DNA of 64,000 nucleotides, from assembly GCA_904063045.1 (NCBI GenBank), contig CAJFCJ010000005.1, positions 2,328,588 to 2,392,587 of the forward strand, read 5' to 3'. A model generated the notes under the pieces. That model ran no database searches. It was not told the DNA's origin and saw only the letters and a list, made by a program, of their open reading frames with translations. Within the stretch, counting starts at the first letter, position 1. Every line of letters begins with the position of its first letter. The DNA comes from Dimorphilus gyrociliatus. Taxonomy: Eukaryota > Animalia > Annelida. Shown here in pieces: positions 35,442 through 63,431 of the stretch. Both the position numbers and the translations under genes were made by a program.

Positions 35442-38400
35442 ATGAACAACAACGAGCAACAGCTTCAATTGCAAAGACAGCAACAAAAATCGCTGTCTTT
35501 CTTGGAAGAGCAATTCTTAATGTCTGAAGAATTGAAAGAAATTAAGGACGCAATTTTCGACTATTTGACAAAAAAAACAATGAGACCCATTTTACTAGCT
35601 GGTCTAAACTTGAGGACGTATTTGGGAAGAATGGGTCGATCGGTAGTAATTGCCGGGCAAAGAACAAGGGCCAAGAAACGCAGAAGTGAAACTGAAAGTA
35701 ACTATTCGAATTCTTATACTGAATATAATAATTATTAATAATATTTGTCCACATAAAGGTGGCGACGGAAATGAAACACCGGAAGGCCTGGATTCTGCCA
35801 GACGAGGTAAGTCAAGTTTGATCCAGAGCCGTATGAAACAAGTATTTGACAATATCCAAGCTCACCGTACGAAAGATACCGAAGGACACAAGAAAAGATC
35901 CGGAGGTTCCGTCGCTGAAGGTAGGTTAGAAATGAGAGACGGAAAAGTAAAACCAGGTTTCCAAGCTGGCAAAGCGTCTTCTGCTGACATAGAGGATCTG
36001 GAGGAAACTGTGACTCTTATCCGGTATAGTTCACCTGAGGATGTTGATGAATTGATTAGACAATCTGGAGGTAAATGACATTCCTATACAATTAAGATGT
36101 AAAACACAGATTGAAACAGGGAGGGCGTCTATTGTAAAACGTGCCAAGACGCATTTTCCACCTCGTAAGATCAAGTCTATCCTGAAAACACGTAAACGTT
36201 GCATATCCAACGATTCGGACGATGATGAACGAGCAATCACATACTCCCAGTCTACTGGGGATGAAAATCGGAGATCACGAGATGCTATGGGTAAGTTAAC
36301 GCGTAACATAACTATCTCCAATAGGTAAATACAATTTTTTTTTCATAGCTGATGACAGTGAAGATGAAGAAGTCTTGGGGGAGAGGGTGGTTTACACGCA
36401 GATGTCTGTACCTAGAAATCCTGACAAATTTATAAACAAAGCGGTTCAGTTGAATGTAGTTGAAGGTAAATATATGAACATATGTGTAAATACAAATTAT
36501 CATGTAAATAATGATTGAATGTTTTTTCAAGCTGCTCCCATGGAGGATCCTCAACTTCATAACTTGGTTTTTACCGAAATTTCTACATCTAAACCATTTG
36601 ATGACTCGTCTAATGCATCACAAGACATCTATACGTCAGAAGGTAGGCGAGAGTTTTAACATTTTGAAGTAGCAAAAAACTGATTGAGCATTTTCTACAG
36701 AATTGCAGACAACCATTCAAGAGAGCACACTGGGATCTGAACAAGTTAGTGAAACTAACAGAGACAGTCAATCTGATGAATCGAAGAGTAATTTGCCAGG
36801 ATGTAAGCTAAACAAGACATTTAAGCAATCAATTACTAATGATTTTTCACATTTAGCTATCATCAATAAACGATCAGAGCCTCAGAAGAAGTTCTGGATG
36901 TGTATGCAACATAACGGTAAGCTAATATTCTACATTCTTTTTATTAGCAATGATTATTCAATATAAATACTATTTTTACAGAGAAAAAAGAGTTCACTTT
37001 GACTTTACCCAAAGTCGTGATAGCATCCAACGATCGAGAGAAACAAAAACACTGGGTAATATCAGCTGATATGATAAAGCCCGGGATAAAGCGAACTGCG
37101 GGCGTTTCGAAAGAAATGTCTTCTCAAATCGAAGAAAAAAGAAGTCGATTTATTTCTTCAGAGGATGCGAAGCTTTTGAACAGACTACAAAGATATCCAG
37201 CATCCGATAATTCTGACAGCTCTGATTATGATTCCGAAAAGGAAACGTATTTGTCGTCCGACGATGATTTCGTTTCAACTGATGATGAAGGACTCGTCAT
37301 ACAGGTAGATGATGATCTGGTTACTGACGAGGAAGAATTTATACCTTTTGGCGCACAGGATCCTGCCACATACGACGACAAGCAAACGTCTCGTGTGGTA
37401 GTTCCACATATTCTCGATGAGAACGACTCTGACATTTTACCTAGGGAATATGTGGAAATGGTAGGATCAGAGCTTTTGACACTTGAGCATGAAAGTGAGG
37501 TGGCAGTGGGTGGTCTTCGGGCTCAATTATCAATTATAACCAACCATCTGCGCCAAGGTAAAAAGACAATTAAAGACCAGCTTAAAACCGACACAAGAAT
37601 AAAGAAAAAAGCTTTAAAGCACCGATGTAGAAGAGCGACAGCTTTGTATGACTTTTTCAAAATGGACGAGAATCGTGCATTTTCCCGAGAACTTGGAAGA
37701 ATGGCAGAAAAGCTGAAGCAGTCATGTGTGCATCATCAACCAGCGTTTGTTAATCTAATAACACCAGAGATAGATATGGAAAACGTTGGTTCATTAAATT
37801 ATACATCCTGGCTTACTCCAATAGAGGAACACCAGTTTCAGTTAAAAGATAAATTAGGGCGGGTTGAAGGCAATGTCAAAGGCTTTTATGCCATATCTGA
37901 AACTGGGAGATTCCTCTCGATTGACAAGAAACTGGTAAATTATACAAAGAAATTTGAAAGTTTATCAGTTGCTTGGAATGGAAAGCTGGCACTATTATCA
38001 ACAGGGAAGACAGACATTGCCAAAATAAGTATTCTAACCGACCATTTCGCGGAATATGAAAATCTTAAAGTCCTTTCCGAAGTGAAAATATGTACCCCAT
38101 TTTTCAGTGTGTTTGAGCACACTATTGCTTTCGTTACGAATGATCAAGTCAGATTCTACTTAAAAAATTCGAAGAACGTTTGGAACTATGAATTGAAAAC
38201 CTTCAAGCCGGAGAACTGCATGGTTATTGATGACAACATGTATTTGGTACAGAATGATAGAATATTGGAAATCAATAGCGAGACGAGAGACACTATGATA
38301 TACGAAAGCGTACTGAGAACTGACACCTTCTCAGTAGAAAAGCTAATTCACTTCGTTCGAAATGGGTTTAGAATACTTACAACTACAGAAAACTTACACG

Positions 38401-38576
38401 TATTTAATCCTGATAAAAAAGATTGTTCCTACTACTTGATGAATTCGACTTTTGAAGATAAAATTTTGCTGAGTTACTACATCACTCAAGCCAGCATCAT
38501 CTTTTGCTTAAGGAGCAAAGATGACTTTAAAGATTTATCTATTCAAAAATTTCCCTTAGAGGAGTCGTATTTCTGA
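35442..38576 (+). CDS. Cluster family member 1: long disordered N-terminus, coiled coil and C-terminal domain, about 907 aa, at least 8 exons
   Basis: Exons 35442-35697, 35759-36070, 36120-36290, 36349-36465, 36532-36642, 36701-36802, 36857-36916 and 36982-38576 join in frame. The last exon has the family motifs GFYAIS, SLSVAWNGKLAL and SIIFCL. Confidence 0.7.
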
Positions 38577-39143
38577 TATGATAAGTTTTCTGTAGATTGT
38601 TTATTTGTACATATTACATTAATACTCTACTTTTTATGAAATTTATGTAGAGAAACACTTGAATAATTGATATATGTATATAAATATATATAGTTTTTTT
38701 GTGTACAGTATGATATTATGTATATTGTTGCATACATGTAAACTTTGATAACTTTATTTCTTGAATACTTTATGATAAATGTAAATTTTACTGTATTTTT
38801 TTCTATATATATATAAATGTAAATATGTACTGAATAAAAAACAAACTTCAACATGAAGGAGTTTGATGAAACATAAAAACTTATTAAAAAACAAGTATCT
38901 AATCGTGTAGTTGATAGATTTTCCCTACCCCATTCGATAAAGCAAATCGTTGATATGTTAAACTAGAGTACTTTCATAATAAAAAGTTGACACTTCTCGA
39001 AAAATATAGCAGCGCAACGTGTAAGTCACTAGATCTGGTCTTCTAGGCGCATTAGCAATTTAAATTTCACTGAGGTAAGTTCAAGTTTATTCTTTATAGG
39101 TCATAAAAGTAATAATTTCATATAGTTAGCTTATTAAGAAAAA

Positions 39144-40430
39144 ATGGAAAATGAAACTGTATCAAATGAAGTTGAAATTACTACAATCGGCAGTTTTATA
39201 ATCAGTAAACCGTCCAATCTGCGCAAGAGAGATTTTGATTTGTCAAGTGTTTTAAAGAAGCATGGTCTTGATAAATCCTTTGTTTTAAATATTAAGAACA
39301 AAACTGAGTCTAACTATATAGAACTTCTTACTGCCAGTAAACGAGAACTGGAGAAACTCGATGACTTTGTTGCTAATTTAATGAATGGTATTAAAAAGCA
39401 TGAATATAACACTGAGAAAAAGATAGCTAGGTTCTATCATAATAAAAGACTAAAGTTAATTAGATTATTAAACGAAGTGAAGCATATAAACGAGTTTTCA
39501 AGAAGATGTAAGAATAAAGCGTTTCAAGAAGAACTATCCAAAATGGCGGACAAAATTAAATATTCCATTAAGTATACTTGCTCGAAGCATTTAACGTATG
39601 AAAAGAACGAAGTGAATGATCTAGATATTGGTTGTGTATCTCTTCCTGATTTTGAGTCGCCATTAAAAAGTTATGAGATTTGTACAAATGATGAATTAAC
39701 ATCAATTATTTCAAGTTCAAGAGGGTTCTATGGCCTTTTTGCAACAGGAGAAATCCTATGCGTGAATAGTAATGATTTAATTTGTTCAAAAGAAAATTCT
39801 GTTGCAAATATTCTTGTTACAAGCGATGAACAACTATGCTACGTAGTAAAGGATGGAAATACGTCTGTAACGCTAACGATTCTATCAAGTCACTATCATA
39901 TATTCGAAAGCTTTACTATCTATTCAGATACGAGACCTTGTACTTTTTCACAATTTGGCGTGTTTAAAGATGTGATATTCTTAACAACGAAGAACCAAGT
40001 AAGATGCTACGAGAAAAACGATATGGTTCATTGGGTTGAATGGAGTCTACTTGATTCCAAGCCCGTTGTACTAGAAACAAAAGATTGTAATGCTTATGTT
40101 GCTTCCGAAGATTACGTCATGATTATTAATTCAATCGACAAGACGACTACAACTCTTACTAGTAAAAGATGCGTTGAAAATATTTCTATTGCAAGAGATA
40201 TTGTTGGAAAAATTAACGATGATTGCGTAATATTGATAATGGAACAGATTATTCACGTGGTCGATCCAGTTAGAGAAACAGATAAAACGTACCATATGGA
40301 GACACTTTTTCCGGGTGAACAACTTAGAACGTATCGTATTCTTGGGAAGCAAGTTATTTTTTGTCTAACTAGTAAGACCGATCGAATGAAGCTAAGCTTT
40401 AGACATTACCCTCTTAATCCCAACGATTAA
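39144..40430 (+). CDS. Cluster family member 2: RING-less, coiled coil plus C-terminal domain
   Basis: 428 aa ORF without coding introns; motifs DIGCVSLPDFESP, RGFYG, ISIARDIV and VIFCL. Confidence 0.85.
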   Translation: MENETVSNEVEITTIGSFIISKPSNLRKRDFDLSSVLKKHGLDKSFVLNIKNKTESNYIELLTASKRELEKLDDFVANLMNGIKKHEYNTEKKIARFYHNKRLKLIRLLNEVKHINEFSRRCKNKAFQEELSKMADKIKYSIKYTCSKHLTYEKNEVNDLDIGCVSLPDFESPLKSYEICTNDELTSIISSSRGFYGLFATGEILCVNSNDLICSKENSVANILVTSDEQLCYVVKDGNTSVTLTILSSHYHIFESFTIYSDTRPCTFSQFGVFKDVIFLTTKNQVRCYEKNDMVHWVEWSLLDSKPVVLETKDCNAYVASEDYVMIINSIDKTTTTLTSKRCVENISIARDIVGKINDDCVILIMEQIIHVVDPVRETDKTYHMETLFPGEQLRTYRILGKQVIFCLTSKTDRMKLSFRHYPLNPND

Positions 40431-41409: not shown

Positions 41410-42699
41410 TCATTCAGAGCAAATGCAACGGCGGAAATATCTTCGAAACTTGAAAAGTTTTTCATTTGTCGATGTACCAAGGCAAAAGATTACTTCTTCT
41501 TCAGTCATTCTATAGGAGACAAGATATTCTTCTCCAAAAATCGTTTGAGTTTCGTAAACTTCAGCCGAATTCTCTGATGGATCGACGATAAAGATAAAGC
41601 ATTTGGTCGATAATAGAAATTTGCCCTTATTTAGTTCATTAATTAGATTTCTCACAACGGATATCTGACGTTTTCCAATATAGCAGGTAATGTAGGCTTT
41701 TCTATCATCAGAAGTTGCGCTAATGTAGGAACCAACTTCGGTAGTTTCGTACAAAACATTATCAATGATTTTTGAATCCTCCGGAATTTTAGCAGGTTGA
41801 CATTTAGATAATAATCTTGTCCTGTTACTCTTCATCGACAGTTTATATTCAGTGTCGTACAACACCAAATCATCCTTTAGAATATGAAAGTAGGGTAGAT
41901 AATTGGTATAGGTTTTGTTTAATTGGTCAATTAGAGTTAGTTCTTTAAAGCAGTGAGTACTATTAGAGTAAATAAATACTGCAGGAATAGCCGAAACAGA
42001 ATGAGCTATAAACGCCAATTTTCCATCGTAAGTTATTGATATATCTCCAATAGCAAAAGTATTACTCAGAACAATTTGTTTCTTTTCAATATCTATAATT
42101 GATAGTCTCGATTCGCTTGTACAGTAAAATCCATCATCATTCGCTACAATCTTTTTGGGAACAAACTCTAAATCGACAATCTGTTCACCAATAGGATTTT
42201 CAAAAGGTGGAATAATCATTTTACCAATTTCAACGCCTTTAACCGGTTCACATTTTTCATAATAGGCTTTCATTTTCAAAATATTACCAATACAATAAAT
42301 CAGTTTTTCAGCCATTTTTTTAATATCATTCTGAAGATTCTTATTAGTTGTTCTATCGTAATATTCTTTAAGCATTTTCATTTCTTTTACCAGTTTATTC
42401 AACGTAGATAATTTTTCATCGAAAACATTTTCAAGATCCATACGTAAGTTTGTAAATTCCCTACAAACATGAGTTTGAATATTAAATACCTCATCTTTCA
42501 AATTATTAATTTGATTGTATTTATCATTCGTAATATCAATTTTCGCTTTTTCCATATTATCATCTAATATCTTTACAAAATCGTTTGTAAAGAAACCGTT
42601 AAATATTTCCATATTAAATCCATTAGACTCTCCAGAATTTACAACAGTATTCGTAGATTGTTGAGGAGTTTGTTCGTTCATAGATTCAATAGTTTCCAT
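41410..42699 (-). CDS. Cluster family member 3: RING-less
   Basis: First ATG at 42699; motifs EIGKMIIPPFENP, DGFYC, DISITYDGKLAF and VIFCL. Confidence 0.85.
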   Translation of the reverse strand: METIESMNEQTPQQSTNTVVNSGESNGFNMEIFNGFFTNDFVKILDDNMEKAKIDITNDKYNQINNLKDEVFNIQTHVCREFTNLRMDLENVFDEKLSTLNKLVKEMKMLKEYYDRTTNKNLQNDIKKMAEKLIYCIGNILKMKAYYEKCEPVKGVEIGKMIIPPFENPIGEQIVDLEFVPKKIVANDDGFYCTSESRLSIIDIEKKQIVLSNTFAIGDISITYDGKLAFIAHSVSAIPAVFIYSNSTHCFKELTLIDQLNKTYTNYLPYFHILKDDLVLYDTEYKLSMKSNRTRLLSKCQPAKIPEDSKIIDNVLYETTEVGSYISATSDDRKAYITCYIGKRQISVVRNLINELNKGKFLLSTKCFIFIVDPSENSAEVYETQTIFGEEYLVSYRMTEEEVIFCLGTSTNEKLFKFRRYFRRCICSE

Positions 42700-43095: not shown

Positions 43096-43530
43096 ATGAA
43101 ATCATTTGTTATCTTTATCCTTATCTATTACGCTTTTCTTTCTTTGGGGGAAGAAACAATAATTATGGGTAATAATGTCACATATATAAGCTCTAATCGG
43201 ATTAGAACTCTATTGCCTTTAAACGAGAGTACTTCCACGAGTCACTCGGTAGCACCTTCCATAGGAAAGAGAAGGAAATTAATGACATTCTCTGAAAGGT
43301 TCGCCAAGCTAATGGAAGGTGTGAGACGGCCAAGAAAGAGTTATACTCCTGTTCTTGCCGGTTCTATAAGCGTTTTTGTAGCCGTTCTATTAGGTATTGT
43401 TATTTTTGTATTGGTAAAAAAACGGAGAAGATCTACTAGTACAACAGATGATAATTGCACAAGAGATGTTACTCAAACATTATCTATATCATCCGATTCA
43501 AACGAAACAATAAACGATACCAGTACATAG
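43096..43530 (+). CDS. Small orphan type-I membrane protein, 144 aa
   Basis: Signal-peptide-like MKSFVIFILIYYAFLSLG, sequons NVT and NES, TM segment PVLAGSISVFVAVLLGIVIFVLV followed by KKRRRS, and an S/T-rich tail. Confidence 0.7.
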   Translation: MKSFVIFILIYYAFLSLGEETIIMGNNVTYISSNRIRTLLPLNESTSTSHSVAPSIGKRRKLMTFSERFAKLMEGVRRPRKSYTPVLAGSISVFVAVLLGIVIFVLVKKRRRSTSTTDDNCTRDVTQTLSISSDSNETINDTST

Positions 43531-43612
43531 TTTATTAATTTATCTGTTTGTTTGTTTGTTTGTTTTCATTTATATGTTTTTTATTATTATACATAAATTG
43601 TTTGTATTCATA

Positions 43613-44434
43613 TTAAAATGAAGAGAATTCTTTAAATTTTTGAAATTTTGAACATATTTCACACCAATTATTATTATTATTTCTTAATGATCTAAACAGT
43701 TGGCAGACGACGGCACCGTAACGTCCTTTATTATTCTTAGCAATTAGGACATTCTGAGTACAAATTTGAACGCCATTCAACCTATGAAAGTCATCTTGAA
43801 TAGTTTTAAATAGTTTTTTTGTTAGGTTAATTTTTGTTGAGTCGTTTTGTAAGTCTGAAAGTTTACAAACAGCTGGAATATATTCTGTAACAATTGCTAT
43901 TTGTCTAAAAGTGGGAGATACTAAAGGAACAATTAACAATCCGTAGAATTTAGTAATAATCTCCGATTCATAAGAATGTATAGCTAATAGTGAGGCGTCT
44001 TCCAACACATGTCTAACCTCTCTATGATGAGCCTTAATAAATTTAATAGCAACTGGTTTATCATTAAAACTTGCTAGAAACACTTGATAAAAGGCTCCAT
44101 TACCGATACAAATTGCCGAATTATCATTATTAGAAAGTACTAAATTAATATCAGAATTTATTAAGATATTGAATTTATCATTAAATTCTGGTAGATAATT
44201 ATTAATTAACTGTTCAATACTACTTATAGCTTCATTTTTAATATAATCAGGTAGTTTTATATTTGGAACATTTAGTTCATTTTCCATGTGTAGCTTATTT
44301 AAATTTATTACACAATTATCACTTTTAACATTATAATTGGAATATTTCAATTGTTTATATAGATAAGAAATTGCTATTAATCCAGTAATAGTTATAATAG
44401 TAAATTGATCTAAGTCATTTAAATAGCTATTCAT
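43613..44434 (-). CDS. Truncated protein-kinase-like (pseudokinase) protein with an N-terminal hydrophobic anchor, 273 aa
   Basis: Contains IGNGAFYQVF, VAIK, AIVTEYIP and NVLI. There is no catalytic HRD Asp, DFG is replaced by QLF, and the ORF ends about 25 aa later. Confidence 0.7.
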   Translation of the reverse strand: MNSYLNDLDQFTIITITGLIAISYLYKQLKYSNYNVKSDNCVINLNKLHMENELNVPNIKLPDYIKNEAISSIEQLINNYLPEFNDKFNILINSDINLVLSNNDNSAICIGNGAFYQVFLASFNDKPVAIKFIKAHHREVRHVLEDASLLAIHSYESEIITKFYGLLIVPLVSPTFRQIAIVTEYIPAVCKLSDLQNDSTKINLTKKLFKTIQDDFHRLNGVQICTQNVLIAKNNKGRYGAVVCQLFRSLRNNNNNWCEICSKFQKFKEFSSF

Positions 44435-44485
44435 ACTGTAAAATATTAATAAATAAACAAATCAACAAATAAACAAATGTTTAAT

Positions 44486-46504
44486 TTAAAAAATCGTCAT
44501 TTTCTTCTTATTATTTCTCTTTTCTTTGTGAGCATTTATTGTTTTATTTGATTGTTCTAATCTTCTTTTATAATCTTGAGTTTCCTTTAATTTTTCAATC
44601 ATATGTTTATAGACTCTTGTATCTTTTCCTTCGTTTCTTTTTATAGAATTCTCTAATCTATCTATTTCTTTATTTACAACTCTTAACTCTTGTTCAGTTT
44701 TGAACATCTGTCAAAAGAGAATAAAAGAAAAAAACGTATTTGAAATTAATTGAGTAACTGTTTTTTTAAAAAAAAAATAATTACTTGAACATTTAATGAT
44801 TTATCATTTCTCTGCTCTAGATCTTTTTCACTAATTTCTCTTCTGGTTTTATGAGCGGACGGAAGTGTCGTAGTTTTATCTAATTAAAAATTAATATTAG
44901 AATAATATTTACAACTTAGAATAAGAAAAGACATTACCTTTTTTATGTTTAGTACTTAATTTCTTATTAAGAAATTTAAAAACGTCCTTTTGAAGGGGAT
45001 TTTTCTTTTTTATTCGTGTATTAGTAGTATCGACGTTACCTAATTTCCTTTCTTTCATATTCATTATTCTATCTAGAGATTTACCTAGAAAATAGCATAG
45101 TTCAATTATACTTATTATTATTTTTTAACAATAATATAACCTGGTGGTAATACAACTATTGGAACAGGTTCAGATCTTCCTTTATTACTCTTTCCTAATC
45201 CTTCGCCTACTACGTAACCCATTTTAAGCATTAACTTTGAACCGATACCCTTTAATTTATAATATATTGTATTAGTAAGTATTATTAATTTTATACTCTT
45301 ACTAACCTTTGTATATTTTTCCCAATAGCCTATTTGAGAGTTGTCTACATTCTCCTCCTTAATTGTACGTGTTGGACACCACGTTTCGTTACCTTCGTTA
45401 TCTGAATTTTCACTTTCTTCTTCAAAGTCTTAAATAAGAATTACAATGTATATATAATGAAAGAATTATCAACACAAAAAATATTCAATATAACCATGAT
45501 GAAGAGGAAAAATTTGCTGTCTTTCCAATCTTCTTACAACTTTAGGATGTTCTTGATCGAACGTTATTGATATTGAACTATCTTCGTGTAAATCAACAAC
45601 TGTTGCAAGATACCACAATTCATCTGTGGTATCAATTGCAAGACATTTTGATTCTATAGAAACAAAACTAAAAGAAAATCAATAGAACACAAATGATTGC
45701 TATCATGATAATTATTTACTCAAAATCTGGCTCTTCGTATACGTTCAATTCGTTTACTTTAACAGAATAACCATGATTGAATCTATGTATCGTAGGCAAA
45801 GTTTAGATTAATATATAGTTTGTTTAAAATGTCATTAATTTCTTTACCTGCACTTATCTTCTTCTTCGTATCTACATTTATTATTCATAAAATGTGGACA
45901 TGTTCGCATTTTAGGATATTTTGGTGTACAGAATATAACGATAACTTTTGGATCATCTAAATCTGCTGATTCGTCTACGTGCATTATTATTGCATTTGCG
46001 TACTCTAAAGCTCCCCATGATGATCTGAAAGGTGCCTTACACTTTGTACCAGATATATCATTATCTTCATCCGTTTCATCTTTCTTTTTTGGACTGGATG
46101 TCTCTCCCTCATCAACATATAAAGACATTAATTGCTTCTTTTTCAGTGATAATAGACTTTCTATTTAAATATAAAATATTGGTTCAAAATTCAAAGTTAA
46201 TTTCAATTGCAAAACCAAACCTTCAGTTATTTTAACTAATTCTTTTAAGTTTGTTTGCAATTCATTTAGATCCTCATTCTCTTCAGTAGACACCTCGATT
46301 GCCTGATTAACTTGATCGAGCTAGTTTATACAACATATTATCGCTCAGAGAATTTTACTTATTAGATAATAAATACACAGTTAATTTAAATTTTTAAAAA
46401 GAAATGAAATAGAAAGGAAACTGATTTAAGCTTTCAGTAATAATTTTTACCTGTGATTTATATGTTTGTAAACTTGCTTCAGTTTCAATTATTTCGGAAT
46501 CCAT
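44486..46504 (-). CDS. ZGPAT: Zinc finger CCCH-type with G-patch domain protein, multi-exon
   Basis: Starts MDSEIIETEASLQTYKSQ. Has GTKCKAPF..WGALEYANAII, CCCH finger CPHFMNNKCRYEEEDKC, G-patch GIGSKLMLKMGYVVGEGLGK and C-terminus KKMTIF. Confidence 0.9.
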
Positions 46505-49886: not shown

Positions 49887-50085
49887 GTTTTTTTGATGAA
49901 GAATATGAATTATGTTTTTTTCAATTCTATTTTTCAGAAAATATTGTAAACGTTCTCTTCGAAAAGACTTGAAAGTATTAAAATTGAGTACTTTTTTAAT
50001 ACTCTAGACAGAGTTGTATTATATATCCAGGTTAAAGAAACTTCACTTTGTGGCTGGTCTGGCTACCAACAATTTTGAAATAGAT

Positions 50086-53623: not shown

Positions 53624-53992
53624 ATGGCAAGATTTAGTGATTATTGTGACGTATTGGAGAAAAGTAAAAACAGCAATAAACAAGAATTATTGCAGTTGGC
53701 AAAACAAATTCAAGAGAAGATTGCGTTAATTGAACAACAGAAGAAGATAGAATTGGAAAATTTAAATAATACAATTATGTCTATTATACAAACGATTCTT
53801 TTGCATACGAATTTGTTTGACGACGACGATGACGACGAAGAAGAAGAAGAAGAAGACGATGATGAGGAGGAAGGTGAAGACGATTATGAATATTATTACA
53901 ATGACGAAGAAGGTAATGATAATGATCATGATCATGATGACGACGACGACGACGACGATGATGATGATGATGATGGGAACTTTTCTCTATAA
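53624..53992 (+). CDS. Cluster family member 8: partial coiled coil fused to a poly-Asp/Glu tail
   Basis: LAKQIQEKIALIEQQKKIELENLNNTIMSII matches the family coil; it is followed by about 55 mostly D/E codons. Confidence 0.6.
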   Translation: MARFSDYCDVLEKSKNSNKQELLQLAKQIQEKIALIEQQKKIELENLNNTIMSIIQTILLHTNLFDDDDDDEEEEEEDDDEEEGEDDYEYYYNDEEGNDNDHDHDDDDDDDDDDDDDGNFSL

Positions 53993-54672
53993 AAAAGAAA
54001 AAGAATATTAAAAATTAGTTGTCTTAAAGTTGATTAATTCATTTTGTTTTTTTTCTCGTCTTCATAAATAAACATATTTCTATAAATCATATATATATTC
54101 GAATAATTATCTTTTCTTTTAGCCTAATTAGAACTATAAAAACAACCAGACAGACAGTATTGTAACTTATTTAGCGACATTTGTGAGTTGTTGTAATTGA
54201 GCAGTAATACCCATACATAGTAACATAAAACGCCAATCTTTTAAAGATATTCGATATTTGGAGTAAAATAATAATAAAAATAATAAAGAATTCCAAGAAA
54301 ACAACTATATTAATAAACTTTTAAAAGTTTATTAATTAAATTGAAAAATGAAAATGATCTTTTAATAAAATGGAAATAAAAGTCTTTTAAAATTATTATA
54401 ATACTATTAATGAAGATAATTAGGCCCTTTATCTGATAAATAGTCATCTCTTTAAAATAAATTATTAGTATTCGTTCAATTTTTATATCAAAAGTCGCCA
54501 TTTTGATTAAATTGTTTTTTTTTTAGTGTTGCGCCTGATATGATCGGGCCTGAACGAGAATAATAATTCGGCGTAACTAAAAAAATCTACTTCCGCTTCA
54601 ACTCACACTAAAACTGGTATGACTATTTTGCCCCATACATAACTTCTTTTTACTATATCAAATCTTATTGAA

Positions 54673-55536
54673 ATGGAAAATAGCGAAAGTAAGAATAACT
54701 CGAACGTTTTGAAAGAGAGAGAGGAGAGAAAGGCTAAGGCTAAGGAAGAGTATGATAATTTATCCGAAAAATTAAATACATATATCAGCCAGTTAGACGA
54801 TCAAAAGGACAAAGAAATAAATAAACTTAATCACGAAGTAACTTCGCTGATAGCGAAAATTAAGAAGCAAGAAAATGCCCTTCAAGATGAAATTGAAATA
54901 TATTTCGCTGACAAAAAGTCCACCTTGAACCAATTGTTGAACGATGCTAAGAAATTATATGAAATTCAAGATCAAATTTTTACGTTACAACTTCAAAGTG
55001 ATTTAACAACGGCAATGAGCAATTTAAGGCGAGAATGTACTGTTCTGATGGACAAAACCGGTGTATTTCAAAAGAGCTTGGCTTTTGAACAGTTTGATAT
55101 TGGAATATTTACGGGAAACAGGAAGCCACTTTTCGACCTGAATGATATATTATCATCAGACAAAGATAATAAAAGCTTAGCGAATTCAGGTAAATTTAAA
55201 TGAACATATAATTTAATGTATTAAAAAGCTTTTCTTTTTTTTTACTATATTAATATTATAGAGAATAAGAGTGAGTGTGAACAAGCAAATAACATGTTCT
55301 CTACATCCCCGGATAAACAACCTTTGTCAAAGGAATTAATTTCTACTGCACCTAGGAAGAAAAAAATTGAAAAAGTTGCTAAGAATTTTGAAGGAGTAAA
55401 ATTTGGTAAATTATTTATTATATTTGTTTATAAATAAACAAATATTAATATTTGTTTATTTGTATTTATAGCAGGATTTGGATCAGGATTTACTTTCGGT
55501 AACGCAGAGCCGAAAAATTCGTTTACATTCAAATAG
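54673..55536 (+). CDS. Cluster family member 9: coiled coil with a spliced FxFG-like tail, 3 exons
   Basis: Family coil up to FEQFDIGIF, then two phase-1 introns leading to VKFAGFGSGFTFGNAEPKNSFTFK*. Confidence 0.7.
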
Positions 55537-55651
55537 GAGCAGTAAGAAATAAAGAGTTAATCAAAATATGTAAAGTTATTGAGAGAGTAGGAAACAAGTT
55601 TATAATTGTTTTTATTGTATATTTCTTCAATTTTTTATCGGTTTTTATATA

Positions 55652-56881
55652 TTAAACAAAGTTATAATTGAGGTTAATTGGAAAATATTTGAATATTAAT
55701 CTAGATTCATCCTCTAAACAGGATAGGCAAAAGATAATTTGTTCGTTATCAATTCTATAGTTTAATAATCTTTCTTGAGGGAATACTCTCTCCATTTTGA
55801 TTGTCATTGCCAATAGACTTTGAGGACAGATAAGAATAATATTTTCATTAGCGCATACAACAAGAAATCCTTTTGTTGTTATATAATCAATTATCTTTCG
55901 TAATACTGATTTATTACCTCCTTCGTCTAATTCTTGAATGATAATATCTTTCCATTCGTTCTTCTCTAAATCAGCAAATACTAATAGATTGTCAGATATA
56001 TTGTATAAAACATTTTCCATAACAATATTATGTTCAAATTTCATTATTCTACTTGATAAGGATACAGTTTCCGTTGTTTTTTTATGTCTTTTGACAATTG
56101 TTGAATTTTGATAGAGAAGGATAAAATCTTTTAAAACTGCAAATTGTTCAGTAAATCTCTCATTAGATTGTTTTTGAATAGTATAATATTCAGAACTGTA
56201 GAAAGGTTTTGTTATAATTGATACAGTTGCTGAAGATTTCAATAATTGAATATAAGATATTCTATTATCGTTTGTCATTGTTATACTATCAATTTTACCA
56301 TCAACACTATAAATAACCTGATTTCTTTGTAATTCAACAATTTCGCATGAATTTCTAAGAACATAAAATCCATTTTCGTTCGATATTACTTTATCAATTT
56401 TATCATGAAATTCTATGAATTCTTCTTTAATTGGATTTTCAAAATTTGGTATTTTAAGATTGCCAATTTCAAGGCCATTTAAAGAATCGGATTTTTGGAA
56501 AACGCCCTTCTTTCTCATTAGGTTATCGGCGTAGTATTTAACGTTTTCAATCATCTTTGAAAAATCACTTTTTAATATCTTATCTGGAATTTTCTTACGA
56601 TTTTCGTATAATCTTTCAATATACGATACAATATTTTTAAGATTATCCTTCTTTTCCGAGTAGAATAATTCAATTTCAGTTCGAATATCTTCCTGTCTAT
56701 CGTGTATGCTTATCATTAATGACGTAATCTCCGTATTAAGTTTATGTAAGGCTATCCGCTTTTCTTCGTCGATTTTCTCAATTTTACCTTGAATTTTATT
56801 GATAAATAATGAAAAATCATCTTCAGAGAATTCTATTTCATCGTTCAATCGCTTATCAGAAGGATGAACAACTTCCCCCAT
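55652..56881 (-). CDS. Cluster family member 10: RING-less
   Basis: Probable ATG at 56881; motifs EIGNLKIPNFENP, NGFYV and IIFCL. Confidence 0.85.
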   Translation of the reverse strand: MGEVVHPSDKRLNDEIEFSEDDFSLFINKIQGKIEKIDEEKRIALHKLNTEITSLMISIHDRQEDIRTEIELFYSEKKDNLKNIVSYIERLYENRKKIPDKILKSDFSKMIENVKYYADNLMRKKGVFQKSDSLNGLEIGNLKIPNFENPIKEEFIEFHDKIDKVISNENGFYVLRNSCEIVELQRNQVIYSVDGKIDSITMTNDNRISYIQLLKSSATVSIITKPFYSSEYYTIQKQSNERFTEQFAVLKDFILLYQNSTIVKRHKKTTETVSLSSRIMKFEHNIVMENVLYNISDNLLVFADLEKNEWKDIIIQELDEGGNKSVLRKIIDYITTKGFLVVCANENIILICPQSLLAMTIKMERVFPQERLLNYRIDNEQIIFCLSCLEDESRLIFKYFPINLNYNFV

Positions 56882-57265
56882 TTTTCGTTTGATAATGAAA
56901 CAAAATAAAAATGAAACACGTGTTTCCATAGATGTTATTCAGCAAAAAAATGACAACACATGTACTCAATAATTATAATAAAAGTTAAAATATAAAATTC
57001 TGTATTTTTTAATGGAAGTATCAGAAAAAAAAATCAATTTTGAATACAAATTAGGCCTAAACAAAGCAGTTTGCCTTTCCCATTTAATAAATAGTCTAAC
57101 ACCTTGTTCTGTTTTTTTTTAAAAAAACAAAAGTTTTAACAATTTCTTTTTATTGTTCTTTTTTTTTGTTACGAAATAGACTTTGCTGTGTGTTGTTCTG
57201 CATTGAGTACTGATTTTTTTTAATATACAAATATTGAAACAAGATATTATATAAATAATAGAAAA

Positions 57266-58495
57266 ATGTCTAAAGTAAACGCCGATTATTTATGTAATAC
57301 TTTCTTTAATAGAAATAATAATTATAAAATAATAGATAGGAATGAATTCTCAAAGTTTAAATTGCGTTTAATAGAACGAATTAATAGTATTGACGTAAAT
57401 ATGGAGAATGAAATACAAAATTTAAGAGATTCAATTGATATTTTAAATAATGAACTTAGCAGACAGAAAATTGAGATGGAGACGAAACTTAAGGATTTTT
57501 ATGATAATAAGAAGAAGATATTAGAACAATATCTATCCGATGTTAATATTTTACAAGAGACTTATGATAAAATTTCAACTGATTTTCTTAAAGATGAACT
57601 ATTGACAATGATTGATTGCATAAAGGAACTATCTAAGAAGATTTCAAATGAGAAAGGCGTATTTAGACCATCAGAATATTTAGATGATATAAAAATTGGT
57701 AAATTTTCAGTATCGATTGACGAAAAACCTTTTAAAGAATATTCAATTCAGTTGAAAACTCCAATCGAAAAGATTATTGGCAATAAAAATGAATTTTTTA
57801 CTATTCTTAATGGAAATCAAATATTCGAATTAAAGGATAATAAGGTTATATTAACAACTAAAGATAGAATTGATGATCTATCAATTACATTTGATAAAAT
57901 GATATCGTATTGTCAATTTTCAAAGGAGAAAATCAAAATTTTCATCCTAAATGAGAATAATTATGCTGTTGAAGACAATTTTGAGATAAATTTTCAACAT
58001 TTCACTGCGGATTACGCAACATTTTCAGTATTGAAAGATACTATATTAATTCACGATAAATCTCAAGTATTAATGTTTAATAAGGAAACAATAGAATTAT
58101 TCTTCTGTTGGACTTATGGAGAAAATAGGAGTGGAGAAATTTCCAATAGGATTAACGAGAACACGTGCTATCAATATTTCAATCAAACTGGCCTAATATT
58201 CGAAAGTTTTAATGAAAGTAATAAGAATTTTCAAATTAACTCAAATAGAAAATTAATTAAATCTATTAAAGATATTATAACTGAGTTAAGGAACGGAAAG
58301 GTTCTCTTCTGTCATGGAGGAAAGTTAATTATTTTAAATCCTTTTACTTTAGAAAGTTATTTTATAATTATGTCAAAGATTTTCCCTGAAGAGAAGCTCT
58401 TAGATTATTCTATATCTAATAATGAGATAATCTTTTGCTTTTGTAATAGAATTAATCAATTATCTATTACTTTTAAACATTTCTATATTGATTAA
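57266..58495 (+). CDS. Cluster family member 11: RING-less
   Basis: 409 aa; motifs KIGKFSV, DLSITFD, IKDIITELRNGKVL and IIFCF. Confidence 0.85.
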   Translation: MSKVNADYLCNTFFNRNNNYKIIDRNEFSKFKLRLIERINSIDVNMENEIQNLRDSIDILNNELSRQKIEMETKLKDFYDNKKKILEQYLSDVNILQETYDKISTDFLKDELLTMIDCIKELSKKISNEKGVFRPSEYLDDIKIGKFSVSIDEKPFKEYSIQLKTPIEKIIGNKNEFFTILNGNQIFELKDNKVILTTKDRIDDLSITFDKMISYCQFSKEKIKIFILNENNYAVEDNFEINFQHFTADYATFSVLKDTILIHDKSQVLMFNKETIELFFCWTYGENRSGEISNRINENTCYQYFNQTGLIFESFNESNKNFQINSNRKLIKSIKDIITELRNGKVLFCHGGKLIILNPFTLESYFIIMSKIFPEEKLLDYSISNNEIIFCFCNRINQLSITFKHFYID

Positions 58496-58756
58496 TACAA
58501 AAATTAAAGATGCTTAAAATGTTGGTTAAACTGCGGGAATATTCTTCAATACGACATTTATGATTCAGTACAGTTTTTCAATAATAAATATATCGAATAC
58601 AATAGGCAAGTAGGCCGATTTGCTGTAGAAGCATTGCCTGCTATGAGATTTGGCATTCTTTTTTCTCCAACTATCTTATAAGTTAATTCCGAATTTTCAT
58701 TGGTTAAAGTAGCTGATAGAGTAACGGATTATAAGCTAAATAATAAATCTTGGAAT

Positions 58757-60133
58757 ATGGCTTCTGATTGTGCGATCTGTATGGAGAGTTTAAACGATAA
58801 GGATGTTAGACAGTTGCCCTGTCATTCTAGTCATCTGTTCTGCTATCAGTGCCTATTTAAATACGCCGAATCAAATAGGATTCGATTTGGGGATTCTTTG
58901 CCATGTCCGATATGTAAAACGGAAATAGTATGGCCAAAAAATGGGGTAGAATCATTGAAAAGAGTATTTCTAAGAAGATCTCTATCGGAAAGTGATTTTG
59001 GTTCAATGTTAGCAAACGAAAGAAGGAAAACCTTACAAGAGCGGAAGAAAAATTTTGATCTATTAGAAGAACAAACGAATTATTTAATAAAGAAACTTTT
59101 AGATAAGAAAGCTTGTATTGAACAGCAATTGAATAGATTTTATGATGAGAAAATTGAAAATCTTGAACGATTAGAGAAGGAAGCTGAGGAATTGAACAAT
59201 ACACAACTAATCGATTTACCAAATCTAGGTAAATTGTCTAAAGAGGACAGAGAAAGAGATTTGAATATTTCTATAAAAGATATATTAAGGCAGAAGATTT
59301 CTGTTGAAAAGAGAAATTCTCACTCAGAACTATGTAAGGTTACCTACTCGAAGGAGGAAGAGCCAGCCTTTCAATACGGACTTGTTCAACAAGGTCCTCA
59401 TTATATAATTGGAGGTAATTATTGTTTCTTTCTTCAAACTGTTTCCGGTTTTTACGAATGTTCAAATTCTAACGCTCTCCTCTACGATGCAATTAATTTT
59501 TCAAGCGCTAATATAAGCAACGATTCATCATTATTCACTTTCACACAAGACGAAACTGCTCTGCTACATAGTCAAATTTGTAAATGGGATAAGAATACTA
59601 AACTATTCTATAAATATCCAACAACTGGAGCGTCAATTGACGAAATTGATTGGGATGATTTCGTCTATTTCCGCCATAAAAACGACATTATCATTTACGA
59701 TATAAGATCAGCTAAACTTGTTCGTCAACCATTATACGACCAATTCAAAAACAGTTGCCATACCAAATTCAAAAATGGTACTTGGTTTATACTTAAAAAT
59801 GGATACGATTTCCGATATTATCCAATGAAAAATCTAATTACAACAAGAAATTATCAAGGTCATAATGTCCTTATTCAAATACAAGATGGAAAGATCTCAA
59901 TTAGACAAGATATAATTAATGAATTAAGAAATGGTAAAATACTATTTTCCAATGAAAAATACGTCTTTTTATTGGATGAGAATTTAAAAAGTGCTAAAGC
60001 CTATTTACAAAAGAATCTTTTTAGAGAAGGTCAATTAAAAGCTCATTTTCAATCATTAACCGAAATTCATTTTTGTATATTAACAAATATTTCACAAAGC
60101 ACTCAATATTTAATGAAATGCTATAAATTTTAA
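58757..60133 (+). CDS. Cluster family member 12: RING, coiled coil and C-terminal domain; putative E3 ligase
   Basis: CAIC..LPCHSSHLFCYQC..CPIC..WPKNGVESL, the family coil, ISIRQDIINELRNGKILFSN and IHFCI. Confidence 0.9.
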   Translation: MASDCAICMESLNDKDVRQLPCHSSHLFCYQCLFKYAESNRIRFGDSLPCPICKTEIVWPKNGVESLKRVFLRRSLSESDFGSMLANERRKTLQERKKNFDLLEEQTNYLIKKLLDKKACIEQQLNRFYDEKIENLERLEKEAEELNNTQLIDLPNLGKLSKEDRERDLNISIKDILRQKISVEKRNSHSELCKVTYSKEEEPAFQYGLVQQGPHYIIGGNYCFFLQTVSGFYECSNSNALLYDAINFSSANISNDSSLFTFTQDETALLHSQICKWDKNTKLFYKYPTTGASIDEIDWDDFVYFRHKNDIIIYDIRSAKLVRQPLYDQFKNSCHTKFKNGTWFILKNGYDFRYYPMKNLITTRNYQGHNVLIQIQDGKISIRQDIINELRNGKILFSNEKYVFLLDENLKSAKAYLQKNLFREGQLKAHFQSLTEIHFCILTNISQSTQYLMKCYKF

Positions 60134-60901
60134 ATAAAAAATAAAGATAGAAGGACCAAAATAAAAAACATAAAAGAAATTTTTATTTAAATACTTTTGT
60201 TTTTTTAAAAAAAAAAAATTAGCCGGTTTTTTTTTTTCTATTCTTATCTTCTTAATCAACGTAAATTTTTTTTTTGCAAAAATGCATTATTAATGAAAAA
60301 TAATATAAAAACAATAAAAAGTTTTATTAAGTGAATTTTAAAAAAAAAGAAAAAAAACACAAAAGAAAATTGAATTATTACACAAAGAACAATTGAAACA
60401 ATTAAACAATTTTAGTCAATTATTCATTTTTAAACAGGTAGAAATATTTTCATTTAGATAAAGTATAAAAAAAATTATAGGAAGATAAAATTTAATATGG
60501 CTACCGGTTTGATTTGAAATTAAAACGAGCGGAGAAGGAAATGAGATGGGAAAAACCACAGTAATCCGTGAGTCATTTAGCTATAACCTCCTTGAAAAGG
60601 GGTTAACCACGTGGGTTTTTCTTATATATATATATATTACTAAATAGCTGAGCCTAATCAGATAGTATCTTCTATTTAAAGGTAGGTGGGTTTATTCTAT
60701 ATATTCTACTAGAAAATAAGAGAATTTAACCTATTTTACACTCTTTATTAATTTAATTGTTTGTTTTCCTATTACGTGACATTACAATGTATTAGCTGTT
60801 ATTAAGTATTCATTAAGATTACTGGGAAATCTCGTATTGACCACTTTCTAATCAATATATGCACTTTAGTAACCGATAAATATTGGTTTCATATATTTTC
60901 T

Positions 60902-62332
60902 ATGAAAAATTTACTATTTAACCTAGATAATTTGCCAAGGACTTTTGCAATGGAATGCAGTATTTGCTTAGAGAATCTCTGCTCTTCTAAAGAAACAAAG
61001 AGACTACCTTGCTATTGGTCTCATGTATTCTGTACAACCTGTTTAAAAGATATTATAGAAAGAAAGGATATAGGCGGATATTTCTCGTGTCCAATTTGTC
61101 AACACCCGATAAAATATCCTGAAGGTGGCATTGAAACATTTAGGAGTATTGATACAAAAAAGACTTGTATGGAAAATTACAAAGATGAGATTAATAGAGA
61201 GACTGAAAGACTGAATTTAAAAAGGAAAGCGGATATTGATGAATTAAATAAACATGTTAAATGTTTAAAACAATCAATTGATAATGATGAGACACGTATT
61301 AGTTATAAAATATGCAATTTCTACAATGGTATGAAAGAAAGCTATCGTCAAATTGCAGAGAATATTACAGATTATTTAAAATCGGAGGCTCTCTATACAA
61401 ACTCTGTTCAAAATAGAAAATTAATAACTTTCAAGGAGACAATAATTAGTTCAGTAGATAATAATATATCGAAGAACATTGTATTAAACTTCTCGGAGCC
61501 TAGACTTAATTATGTAAAATTACAATTCCAACACGAGGAAAAACCTGTTAAAGAATACTTTAGAGAAATGCCAGAGTCTTTTCGAATATTTGGTGGTGAT
61601 AATTGTTTTTTGGTTGTGTACGATAGGCAAATTTTTGAGTGGAATAGCAACGAATATATTCGTCATGCAGGTGGCGTTGAATTTACCGATGGTGCTATAA
61701 ATAGTAATAAGGAATTTTATGTTTATAAAACGCTTCCTCAAAACAGAGAGGAACGGGGAACGGTTGTGCAATGGTGTTACAAAGATAAATCTTTTCAGTC
61801 AATCTACAATAAGAGAAACGAGGAGGAGGTTAAAATAAATGGTAAAAAGTTCTTAGTCTTTACAAATCAAACAAGTCTTGTCCTATTCGATTTACAAACT
61901 GGTCAACTAATAAACATTGATCTGCATTACGACCTTTCCTGCTGGAAGACGAAATACATTAGTCATGGGGATATTTACTTTCTACGAGATAGCATAAATC
62001 TTCAATACTTTCCTATTAGTAAGTTAATTGACGATAAAATATTACCTGGAAATAACATACTCATAAATATTCATCACGAACAAATATCTATAAGAAACGA
62101 TATAATAGAAGAAATTGTTATGAATGAAAGAGTTTTACTATCTAATGAACAATTTGTATTCATCTTGAATGAGAACAATAAATCTGCTATTGCCTATCCC
62201 CAAAGAAATGTATTTCAGGAAGGTCAAATAATAAGCTATTTTGTTACCGACAATGATATCCACTTTTGCATTTTGTGCGAATCGTTAGCAGGTAAACATT
62301 GTTTAATTAAGAGCTATCTTCTCAAAGTATAA
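60902..62332 (+). CDS. Cluster family member 13: RING, coiled coil and C-terminal domain; putative E3 ligase
   Basis: CSIC..LPCYWSHVFCTTC..CPIC..YPEGGIETF, ISIRNDII and IHFCI. The start may instead be the ATG at 60950. Confidence 0.9.
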   Translation: MKNLLFNLDNLPRTFAMECSICLENLCSSKETKRLPCYWSHVFCTTCLKDIIERKDIGGYFSCPICQHPIKYPEGGIETFRSIDTKKTCMENYKDEINRETERLNLKRKADIDELNKHVKCLKQSIDNDETRISYKICNFYNGMKESYRQIAENITDYLKSEALYTNSVQNRKLITFKETIISSVDNNISKNIVLNFSEPRLNYVKLQFQHEEKPVKEYFREMPESFRIFGGDNCFLVVYDRQIFEWNSNEYIRHAGGVEFTDGAINSNKEFYVYKTLPQNREERGTVVQWCYKDKSFQSIYNKRNEEEVKINGKKFLVFTNQTSLVLFDLQTGQLINIDLHYDLSCWKTKYISHGDIYFLRDSINLQYFPISKLIDDKILPGNNILINIHHEQISIRNDIIEEIVMNERVLLSNEQFVFILNENNKSAIAYPQRNVFQEGQIISYFVTDNDIHFCILCESLAGKHCLIKSYLLKV

Positions 62333-62912
62333 CTGATTTGTTATATAAACATATAGATACAAATACAGCCGAAAAATTATTTTCAACACATTTTGTCAAT
62401 TTTATATTGTCTAGAAAATAAAGTAACAACTGCGCCATCTAACGATGAACCAGAAAAAAGTTTTGTCATTTTCATTAAAAATGAAAAAGCAAAGAAAAAT
62501 TGTTTTTTATTTTTTTTTTAAAAAAACAAAAGCAAACCAAAAAAACTTTCTCTTTCAATTGTCCTTTTATCCTTTAGAAAACAAAATATTCCTTTTCAAA
62601 AAACTTTCGAAAAGCTATAAAGATAAAAACAAACAATTAGAGGATAATGTACAAAAAAAAACAAACAACAACAACCAGTTTTAGACCAAATTTGTGTATT
62701 TTTAAGGATTATCTAGTCATGTTTATTACGTATGATTTGTTTTTACTAAAAAAAAAAAGAATGAAATAAAATAGAGGTTATAGGCTTAAAAAAAATCATT
62801 AAAAGTTATAAATAAGTATATATTGCATAGTTATATACATTGGATACAGTACATAAATAATAGATAGTCGGTATGTAAAAATCGTTATATTCCACTTTTG
62901 ATTAATCTAAAT

Positions 62913-63431
62913 TTATCTAAAGAATCCTCTAAGGTCGTTTAAAAGACTAGCAAAAAAGTTTACATGATAATGAAAACTTTCTAAACGATCTTGCCGATTT
63001 GAATGGCGTATATTATAATCGTCATTTTCATTGTAATCGTCCTCATCGTTATCACGACTTCCGTTAAATGATGAAGTATTTTGCCTTCCGTATTCATTAA
63101 GAGTAGAAACATTTTTAATGATAACGTTCTTTCGTTTTTTTCGCTGATAAGAGCGAGTACTATCAGAATTCTCCTTGGATATTTCTCTATTATTTAATAT
63201 ACGAAGTGAAATTGAATAAAACATTGAATTTTTTATCTTTTCAAAAGATTTAATTCCTTTTTTAGGCCATTCGAGTTCCCTTTGACAAAGTGGGCATAGG
63301 AAATAACTTCCAGCCTTTATATCTTTTAATCTAGCGTATTTTTGAAGACATTTATCACAAAATATATGCTTCGAATGACAGGGTAGACATCTTCCATTCC
63401 TGAAAGGATCTTTACAAATTGGGCATTCCAT
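62913..63431 (-). CDS. Cluster family member 14: RING-only protein, 172 aa
   Basis: CPIC..LPCHSKHIFCDKC..CPLC..WPKKGIKSF, then RKKRK and a low-complexity tail. No coil or C-terminal domain. Confidence 0.85.
   Translation of the reverse strand: MECPICKDPFRNGRCLPCHSKHIFCDKCLQKYARLKDIKAGSYFLCPLCQRELEWPKKGIKSFEKIKNSMFYSISLRILNNREISKENSDSTRSYQRKKRKNVIIKNVSTLNEYGRQNTSSFNGSRDNDEDDYNENDDYNIRHSNRQDRLESFHYHVNFFASLLNDLRGFFR

Follow-up and report, generated by a model that had tools for sequence, protein, structure and literature searches.

The locus between positions 35442 and 63431 of the window (the whole 64-kb stretch of Dimorphilus gyrociliatus DNA analysed here) raises the question of what a crowded row of divergent RING, coiled-coil and beta-domain genes is derived from, and whether it represents, as the first-pass annotation supposed, a fast-evolving defence system. 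A six-frame search with the family HMM matched exactly 14 segments, all within 36954-63449, with the next-best segment of the window at E 0.3, and the 14 genes were thus confirmed as one family. Ten ORFs with a full coil and C-terminal domain scored between E 1e-41 and 1e-98; the RING-only gene at 62913 reached E 4e-19, and the coil-only genes at 54673, 50086 and 53624 reached E 8e-23, 1e-08 and 3e-05. Family HMM and Pfam together reproduced the domain counts proposed before, namely 13 coils, 10 C-terminal domains and four genes with a RING (three intact) or a degenerate RING remnant. The high divergence of the paralogues was also borne out, the ten full members displaying pairwise identities of 13-29% (mean 20%), and no recent duplicates, close paralogue pairs or conversion tracts were found in the array. 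It is broken up by three unrelated genes at 43096-46500 and continues past the window edge, the 4.55-Mb scaffold bearing family accessions that run from CAD5114567 to CAD5114642. Searches, folding and trees used the single-exon parts of database proteins, and the stored proteins served for exon mapping alone.

Most members are RING-less and combine a coil with the C-terminal domain, identified below as a propeller. Member 1 (35442-38576, forward strand; DgyrCDS3671, 889 aa) carries both in its last exon (36981-38576), after a long, acidic, low-complexity N-terminal part spread over several exons in the database model. The same layout is found in member 2 (39144-40430, forward; 428 aa, a single ORF), member 3 (41410-42699, reverse; 429 aa), member 4 (47030-48250, reverse; 406 aa, propeller model pLDDT 92.7, L005 orthologue with 54% identity), member 5 (48654-49886, reverse; 410 aa, the L005 gene at the equivalent place being only a distant family member), member 10 (55652-56881, reverse; 409 aa, L001 orthologue with 58% identity, coil 76%, propeller 50%) and member 11 (57266-58495, forward; 409 aa, L001 orthologue P0014 with 38% identity). 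Member 7 (51145-52509, reverse; 454 aa) adds a degenerate RING, which has lost its first Cys pair, keeps a partial Cys/His set without a Pfam match and is identically degenerate in the orthologue P0023. Intact RINGs precede coil and propeller in member 12 (58757-60133, forward; 458 aa, C3HC4 type, full-length model pLDDT 91.7), whose orthologue P0002 is 65% identical (RING 85%, coil 43%, propeller 71%), and in member 13 (60950-62332, forward; 460 aa, L012 orthologue P0012 with 52% identity).

The remaining genes are single-domain forms. Member 6 (50086-50790, forward; 234-aa ORF) is coil-only and has a syntenic L005 orthologue with 59% identity and a dN/dS of about 0.03, while the short coil-only member 8 (53624-53992, forward; 122 aa, acidic tail) has one in L014 with 47% identity over 68 codons and a dN/dS of about 0.04. 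The third coil-only gene, member 9 (54673-55536, forward), has the L014 orthologue P0055 (39% identity) and is spliced, both introns (55190-55261 and 55406-55474) lying 3' of the coil. Member 14 (62913-63431, reverse; 172 aa) is RING-only with a conserved amphipathic C-terminal end, and its syntenic L012 orthologue (167 aa) has a 68% identical RING and a dN/dS of about 0.02. Transcripts were found for four of the four genes tested (members 9-12) among RNA contigs from unchallenged animals.

A family HMM search covering 1.84 billion representatives revealed about 80 relatives, and all assigned ones belong to Dimorphilus or to Logan runs that share its gene order (SRR23372216/28/29 and ERR14224704, treated as other Dimorphilus-like lineages on gene order alone). 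P0075, P0077 and P0083, long bacterial-looking proteins at E 1e-5 or worse, were left out as false matches. A scan of JGI metagenomes gave no relative. Word-indexed searches for homologues, run from three alignments, each yielded only two Dimorphilus/Logan proteins, which is uninformative on longer or shorter kin. Our literature searches found no description of the family, and its characterisation as lineage-restricted and undescribed is supported.

The RING gives a hint at the ancestry. Pfam recognised it at 58757, 60950 and 62913, and it is absent from 10 of the 14 genes. Compared with PDB sequences, the RING profile ranked TRIM2 (E 1e-13), TRIM56, TRIM3 and TRIM32 above all other RINGs, and the family RING includes the TRIM2-type tail 'P..G...L/F'. 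Among the 29 sequences with an intact C3HC4 pattern, the linchpin, a position essential in TRIM2 (PMC9732051), is Arg or Lys in 21. Member 12 has Lys there. The activity of members 12-14 is nevertheless uncertain, because their proteins start directly with the RING and lack the preceding helix that TRIM RING dimers use, and because Gln occupies the linchpin in members 13 and 14. As proposed earlier, no B-box separates RING and coil: Pfam found none, the motif occurs in none of 83 sequences except one mis-called RING, and in the model of member 12 the RING leads directly into a long helix. This model shows helices at 78-148 and 162-177, the coil helix comprising only about 70 residues, with about 20 residues between the last helix and the propeller; no filamin domain was matched by Pfam. 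The long coil is common to 13 genes, but a coil-only profile gave only generic helical matches and the coil cannot be typed as TRIM by itself; its best match, Borealin (E 0.009), was taken as chance.

The C-terminal domain, annotated at first as 230-250 aa long, in fact measures about 255-270 aa (269 profile positions) and folds in two AlphaFold2 models (pLDDT about 92) into a distorted six-bladed beta-propeller, in which a helix replaces the inner strand of blade 5. Among 48,161 chains, TRIM-NHL domains were four of the best five structural matches (Brat NHL Z 14.1, NHL-2 13.3, TRIM2 13.1, Mei-P26 13.0); the second member's model retrieved the same set at Z 11-12, and six-bladed propellers fill the match lists of both. 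Could a TRIM-type RING-coil head rather have been fused to an unrelated six-bladed propeller, much as other TRIM heads of this genome are reportedly joined to LRR arrays? The NHL matches lie within 1 Z unit of phytase and other six-bladed propellers (rmsd about 4 A, 7-13% identity), PDB sequence-profile matches are of PQQ/WD40 type and not NHL, and the blade-5 helix is compatible with such a fusion. A Pfam scan of the domain in 72 members gave no NHL match and nothing consistent; it is a domain family without a Pfam model. Against a fusion, the RING points independently to the same TRIM class as the leading structural matches, and domain length and last-strand closure fit NHL, which makes this origin rather improbable. 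Foldseek searches of PDB and viral libraries returned generic WD40/Kelch propellers (rmsd 6-12 A), with no specific relative and no sign of a viral donor. Shape and feature searches of the ESM Atlas gave bacterial propellers at TM about 0.6, which we do not consider evidence of transfer. A further reading takes the best matches, RNA-binding NHL domains, at face value: the proteins would be Brat-, NHL-2- or Mei-P26-like germline or developmental regulators, each propeller reading its own RNA motif, and RING loss would mirror the RING-less Brat (PMC4015489). In RNA-binding NHL domains, however, the d-a and b-c loops form an electropositive top face (PMC4015489), whereas the same loops here are neutral to acidic and average a net charge of -1.5 (sd 3.7), a value obtained by counting residues in loops set by model secondary structure and not from an electrostatic map. 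No position reaches 40% Lys/Arg, and 5 of the 72 members have a basic face (+4 or more). Because the top face is not basic, Brat-like RNA binding is argued against, and we rate this reading as slightly less probable again than a fusion.

Taken together, the TRIM2/3/56/32-type RING and the Brat, NHL-2, TRIM2 and Mei-P26 propeller matches indicate that the family most likely arose from the class VII TRIM-NHL proteins, as a branch without B-box and filamin domains. The first-pass annotation was right about a TRIM-like family without a B-box, though not in leaving it unplaced, and the products are likely E3 ligases and adaptors. With class VII (TRIM2, TRIM3, TRIM32, TRIM56, TRIM71/LIN-41, Brat, Mei-P26 and NHL-2) the family shares the RING type with its tail motif, a long coil, a six-bladed propeller of some 270 aa at the C-terminus and RING-less variants, as in Brat. 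It differs in lacking the B-box, the NHL sequence signature and the filamin domain, which precedes the propeller in all class VII proteins but TRIM32, in its coil helix of about 70 residues and its blade-5 helix, in maintaining RING-only and coil-only genes, and, compared with the RNA-binding members including LIN-41, in its top face. Tens of copies in arrays also contrast with three to five class VII genes per genome (PMC4015489).

The comparison with a second lineage bears on the function of the array. Ten of the 14 genes, fragments included, have one-to-one syntenic orthologues, with whole-gene dN/dS of 0.01-0.07 and domain-wide values of 0.01-0.15, both at saturated synonymous sites and the latter averaged over domains. 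The divergence of the paralogues reflects age, for the orthologues correspond one to one, keep their order and evolve under purifying selection, and at the level of whole domains the expected positive selection in the C-terminal domain was not found. The propeller evolves faster than the coil in two window pairs, slower in three and equally in one, its top and bottom faces are 57% and 54% identical (p 0.27), and in most pairs conservation is highest in the RING (61-98%). These results do not support a fast-evolving defence system or an arms race; the genes look like a stable panel of paralogues in fixed roles, without quick turnover. An innate-immune arsenal of sensors and E3 ligases, whose propellers recognise pathogen molecules and were diversified by host-pathogen conflict like the finTRIM B30.2, is accordingly unlikely, though the most serious alternative. 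It would suit a large, clustered, mostly single-exon family whose members vary widely in orthologue identity (37-86%), and some turnover is seen, as L005 has a full RING member with no counterpart at the equivalent place in the window, and for member 5 no clear orthologue was identified. For the D. gyrociliatus genome only nine family expansions are reported, most of them local and immune-related (PMC7854359), and they may or may not include this family; TRIM56 and TRIM32, whose RINGs rank close to that of the family, have antiviral roles. The finTRIMs, fish clusters of RING-B-box-coil-B30.2 genes (PMC2657112), resemble the array as a large clustered expansion of one lineage, in which the C-terminal recognition domain varies and truncated forms occur. 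Yet they keep the B-box, are virus-induced, have near-identical N-termini, expanded in bursts specific to single species and evolve under strong positive selection (PMC2657112). A near-identical RING/B-box, such bursts and such selection are not seen in the array, with its 20% paralogue identity, stable synteny and purifying selection. The propellers might instead act as conserved pattern sensors under purifying selection. Neutral birth-and-death, in which the single-domain genes would be duplicates in decay and the majority of members redundant, might explain the fragmented architectures and the low-complexity tails of members 6, 8, 9 and 14. It is largely refuted, since all four fragments have syntenic orthologues truncated in the same form (dN/dS 0.01-0.04, synonymous distance saturated), and member 9 is spliced and transcribed; being conserved in a second lineage, these genes are not debris.

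The preferred reading combines a Dimorphilus-restricted expansion derived from TRIM-NHL with RING subunits shared by adaptors, a joint model to which we assign a probability of roughly 0.6 and whose descriptive side (architecture, fold, RING type, conservation and transcription of four genes) was observed directly. A TRIM2/3/32/56-like ancestor would have expanded long ago and lost its B-box and filamin domains, while the six-bladed propeller drifted past sequence recognition. The long helix may form antiparallel dimers of TRIM type, and different propellers may bind different protein targets. A few RING subunits, members 12 and 13 in this array, could recruit E2-ubiquitin, and the RING-less majority would either deliver targets to these subunits through coil heterodimers or sequester targets on their own; RING-only and coil-only genes would be maintained as modulators of coil pairing. 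On the tree, a branch (94/96) sets off most RING-less members, whose expansion followed RING loss, and two RING-less members show much stronger conservation of the coil than of the propeller (76 vs 50%, 72 vs 44%). A precedent is TRIM2-TRIM3 heterodimerisation, which restores ligase activity, but that contact relies on the filamin domain (PMC9732051) absent from the present family. Only tentatively do we extend the model to a 'split' TRIM system, a cullin-like combinatorial ligase in which few catalytic RING subunits are shared by dozens of RING-less propeller adaptors via coil heterodimers and tuned by RING-only and coil-only parts, with recognition by a helix-modified propeller and possibly a role in the innate immunity of an animal whose genome is compact.

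The usual TRIM-NHL layout is a fixed RING-B-box-coil-propeller order, and D. gyrociliatus is known for gene loss. Tens of derivatives without a B-box are retained in this gene-losing animal, over half of them RING-less, together with single-domain genes under purifying selection. If the parts assemble via the coil, they offer a natural test of heteromeric TRIM ligases with exchangeable adaptors and of whether the B-box is dispensable; otherwise the array would be a lineage-specific expansion of the ordinary kind, and of modest interest. Malin (NHLRC1) likewise unites a RING and an NHL propeller without a B-box in a single coding exon, but it is single-copy and has no long coiled coil. By model features, the nearest named ESM Atlas clusters (scores 0.84-0.87, leads only) are marine-invertebrate proteins of 530-730 aa from Cnidaria, Echinodermata and Mollusca, with a RING, with or without a B-box, and an NHL or Kelch propeller (50-170 members each). 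Unlike the array family they have Pfam-recognisable NHL, Kelch or B-box domains, and none was matched by the family HMM among the representatives searched. With regard to the gene models, DgyrCDS3676 (1204 aa), which joins members 11-13, is a gene-model fusion, as RNA contigs cross its supposed splice points. The C>T differences in run X6 fit a bisulfite-type library, and editing was rejected.

Searched in all six frames with a family profile, the window gave 14 matching segments and no other notable match, which bears out the earlier count of 14 genes. Ten carry a coil and a C-terminal domain (members 1-5, 7 and 10-13), three are coil-only (members 6, 8 and 9, at 50086, 53624 and 54673) and one is RING-only (member 14, at 62913); members 12, 13 and 14 have intact RINGs, and that of member 7 retains a partial ligand set only. 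Domain scan, motif search and the model of member 12 all revealed no B-box, as the first-pass annotation had stated, and the high divergence noted there also held: the ten full members share 13-29% identity and, beyond one 54-base match, no recent DNA-level repeat. The first family gene of the window corresponds to database protein DgyrCDS3671 on a scaffold of 4,546,684 bases.

A HMMER search of 1.84 billion representatives, proposed beforehand for copy number and taxonomic range, gave 83 matches; three were discarded as weak false matches, leaving 80 family members and none in other named animals. All 27 family rows looked up were D. gyrociliatus database proteins or Logan contigs. The D. gyrociliatus proteins are spread over five scaffolds (4.55, 4.60, 3.79, 3.61 and 1.72 Mb), and the Logan loci fetched, taken as related worm lineages, carry tandem family runs, several in the gene order of the reference. 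Judged from these sequences, the family is lineage-restricted.

Modelling of the C-terminal domain from a 72-sequence alignment (pLDDT 92.7) predicted a six-bladed propeller closed by its N-terminal strand, and the full-length model of member 12 (pLDDT 91.7) displayed a RING and the beta domain with two helices in between, the first of 71 residues and the second short. Among 48,161 solved chains, the best structural matches were the NHL domain of Brat (Z 14.1, rmsd 4.1, 233 aligned), a phytase (Z 13.4) and the NHL domains of NHL-2 (Z 13.3), TRIM2 (Z 13.1) and Mei-P26 (Z 13.0); with member 12, the same NHL domains reached Z 11-12, behind an unrelated propeller. Since these scores are tied and Pfam NHL matches no family member, the fold alone is no proof of NHL. 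Both models place a predicted helix at the expected site of the blade 5 inner strand (residues 196-204 and 382-391), and few parts of the family are better conserved.

The RING provides a pointer to TRIM-NHL proteins independent of the propeller fold, as its profile ranked TRIM2 (E 1e-13), TRIM56, TRIM3 and TRIM32 above all other PDB RINGs and also aligned the tail after the TRIM2 RING. A C-terminal NHL domain is the defining feature of the class comprising TRIM2, 3, 32 and 71 (PMC9732051). Because RING type and NHL-like fold point the same way, the simplest reading, and in our view a likely one, is descent from a TRIM-NHL protein whose B-box and filamin domains were lost. The suggestion that the family falls outside well-described ones stands in part: this descent would lead to a known class, but lacking a B-box and any Pfam NHL match the family is neither a formal TRIM nor recognisable as NHL by sequence; most plausibly, it operates like a class VII TRIM. 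Marine invertebrates commonly have expansions of RING + propeller proteins (going by leads only), and the kind is already known; what is new is the B-box-less, helix-modified and modular form, of which literature searches found no published description, in line with the claim of an undescribed family.

For ten of the 14 genes, a second lineage has one-to-one orthologues with order and orientation kept (members 4, 6 and 7 in locus L005; 8 and 9 in L014; 10, 11 and 12 in L001; 13 and 14 in L012), the full-length pairs being the starred sisters in the tree. Orthologues of this kind had been expected to argue against a specific expansion if found across phyla; they exist in the second lineage, and no other named animal yielded the family. 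Per gene, dN/dS is 0.01-0.07, with equality to 1 rejected in every case; as dS is mostly >3 and synonymous sites are saturated, these figures describe average constraint, under which a few selected sites could hide. A second array on another scaffold, of six genes with 55-86% identity, gives the same picture; in the least saturated pair there (dS 1.3), dN/dS is 0.03 for the gene as a whole and 0.026 for the propeller. At the level of whole domains, the positive selection predicted for the C-terminal domain was not seen. Propeller/coil identities of 50/76 (member 10), 44/72 (member 4), 71/43 (member 12), 43/31 (member 11), 44/25 (member 7) and 50/49 (member 13) indicate that the propeller is not consistently the fastest part. 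Some turnover occurred: next to the member 7 orthologue, L005:1683-3866 holds a complete RING-bearing member together with an unrelated ORF (262 aa, no Pfam match), both absent beside member 7 in the window, and no clear partner of member 5 was found in the second lineage. One exceptionally slow member on another scaffold (L011:10001-11596, L009:10001-11596, L010:3292-4887) shows 86-92% identity among three lineages, 97-98% in the RING, and is a candidate for the ancestral-function copy.

What the window adds on the family is its conserved RING-only and coil-only genes. The member 14 orthologue, 167 aa long and downstream of the member 13 orthologue, has a RING 68% identical, with its last residues conserved too, and the three coil-only genes are likewise conserved in truncated form; such fragment genes are kept. 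The second array contains a RING-coil ORF with a separate propeller ORF downstream, and the split is identical in both lineages (L011:19104-21283 and L003:7458-9626); both halves are under purifying selection, and a joining intron is possible. On the propeller tree, RING absence takes about five changes. Most RING-less members, seven of the window among them, fall together on one side of a branch supported at 94/96, so the RING-less genes multiplied once the RING had been lost, as opposed to decaying singly.

In TRIM proteins, dimers form antiparallel through the coil and substrate is recruited by the C-terminal domain; TRIM2 depends on an Arg linchpin, and pairing with an active paralogue can activate an inactive one (PMC9732051). 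At the linchpin, after the last Cys pair, 21 of 29 intact RINGs have Arg or Lys; member 12 has Lys and member 13 Gln. Building on the domain layout, fold, RING type, transcription and constraint of the array, we favour a stable panel of ligases and adaptors (probability about 0.6), in which members 12 and 13 would supply catalysis, RING-less members would dock through the coil and contribute different propellers, and coil-only and RING-only proteins may tune pairing. The heterodimer step, which we infer, is its weakest link.

An immune arms race seems unlikely. In finTRIMs, near-identical heads go with bursts confined to single species and with strong positive selection (PMC2657112); unlike them, and contrary to the fast-evolving expansion first proposed, the array has syntenic one-to-one orthologues under average constraint, with some turnover. 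NHL domains bind ligands through top-face loops (PMC4015489), and in the family these (loops d-a and b-c) keep 57% identity, as compared with 54% in the bottom loops (p 0.27). RNA regulation by the propellers is more doubtful still: RNA-binding NHL domains are basic at the top loops (PMC4015489), whereas here these average a net charge of -1.5 without a conserved basic position, which makes proteins the more likely ligands. The array is real and lineage-restricted, its role in defence no more than a possibility; the ligase/adaptor panel would leave room for a conserved role in immunity outside any arms race. The genome paper counts nine expanded families, for the most part local and related to immunity, and its text and available supplements name no TRIM, RING or NHL family (PMC7854359).

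Contigs of sequencing runs X2 and X3 are spliced at the GT-AG introns of member 9 and end between genes, and hence represent RNA. They cover members 9, 10, 11 and 12 (5,990 bases of window compared) and extend into the stretch upstream of member 13. As they run through the supposed joins, the model DgyrCDS3676 (1204 aa, 57266-62332), uniting members 11, 12 and 13, is a fusion error. The convergent members 9 (+) and 10 (-) are covered by a single RNA contig (54641-56973), pointing to a probable overlap at their 3' ends. Run X6 showed near-complete C>T / G>A conversion over 54601-60590 (714 and 246 places), a pattern that unmethylated DNA would give in a bisulfite-type library; editing was rejected as its cause.

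Three unrelated genes interrupt the array at 43096-46500. A 273-aa ORF (43613-44434, minus strand) has a hydrophobic N-terminal segment and aligns with the leading half of a protein kinase profile (Pfam PK_Tyr_Ser-Thr at E 6e-05, covering positions 7-105 of 258). Neither the HRD nor the DFG catalytic motif can be recognised, and the product is likely a membrane-anchored pseudokinase. Convergent with this half-kinase lies a 144-aa single-pass membrane protein (43096-43530, plus strand) with a signal-like N-terminus, a transmembrane helix, a basic stop-transfer and no significant Pfam match. The third, a multi-exon gene (about 44440-46510, minus strand) with a CCCH finger (weak Pfam match) and a G-patch-like segment, has its end about 50 bases or less from where the half-kinase begins. 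Outside the array, a 420-aa FAD-dependent monooxygenase ORF (21458-22720, plus strand; Pfam FAD_binding_3, E 1.5e-23) is presumably a COQ6-like, ordinary housekeeping gene, and a tRNA-Gly(TCC) gene (63813-63883, minus strand) lies just past member 14.
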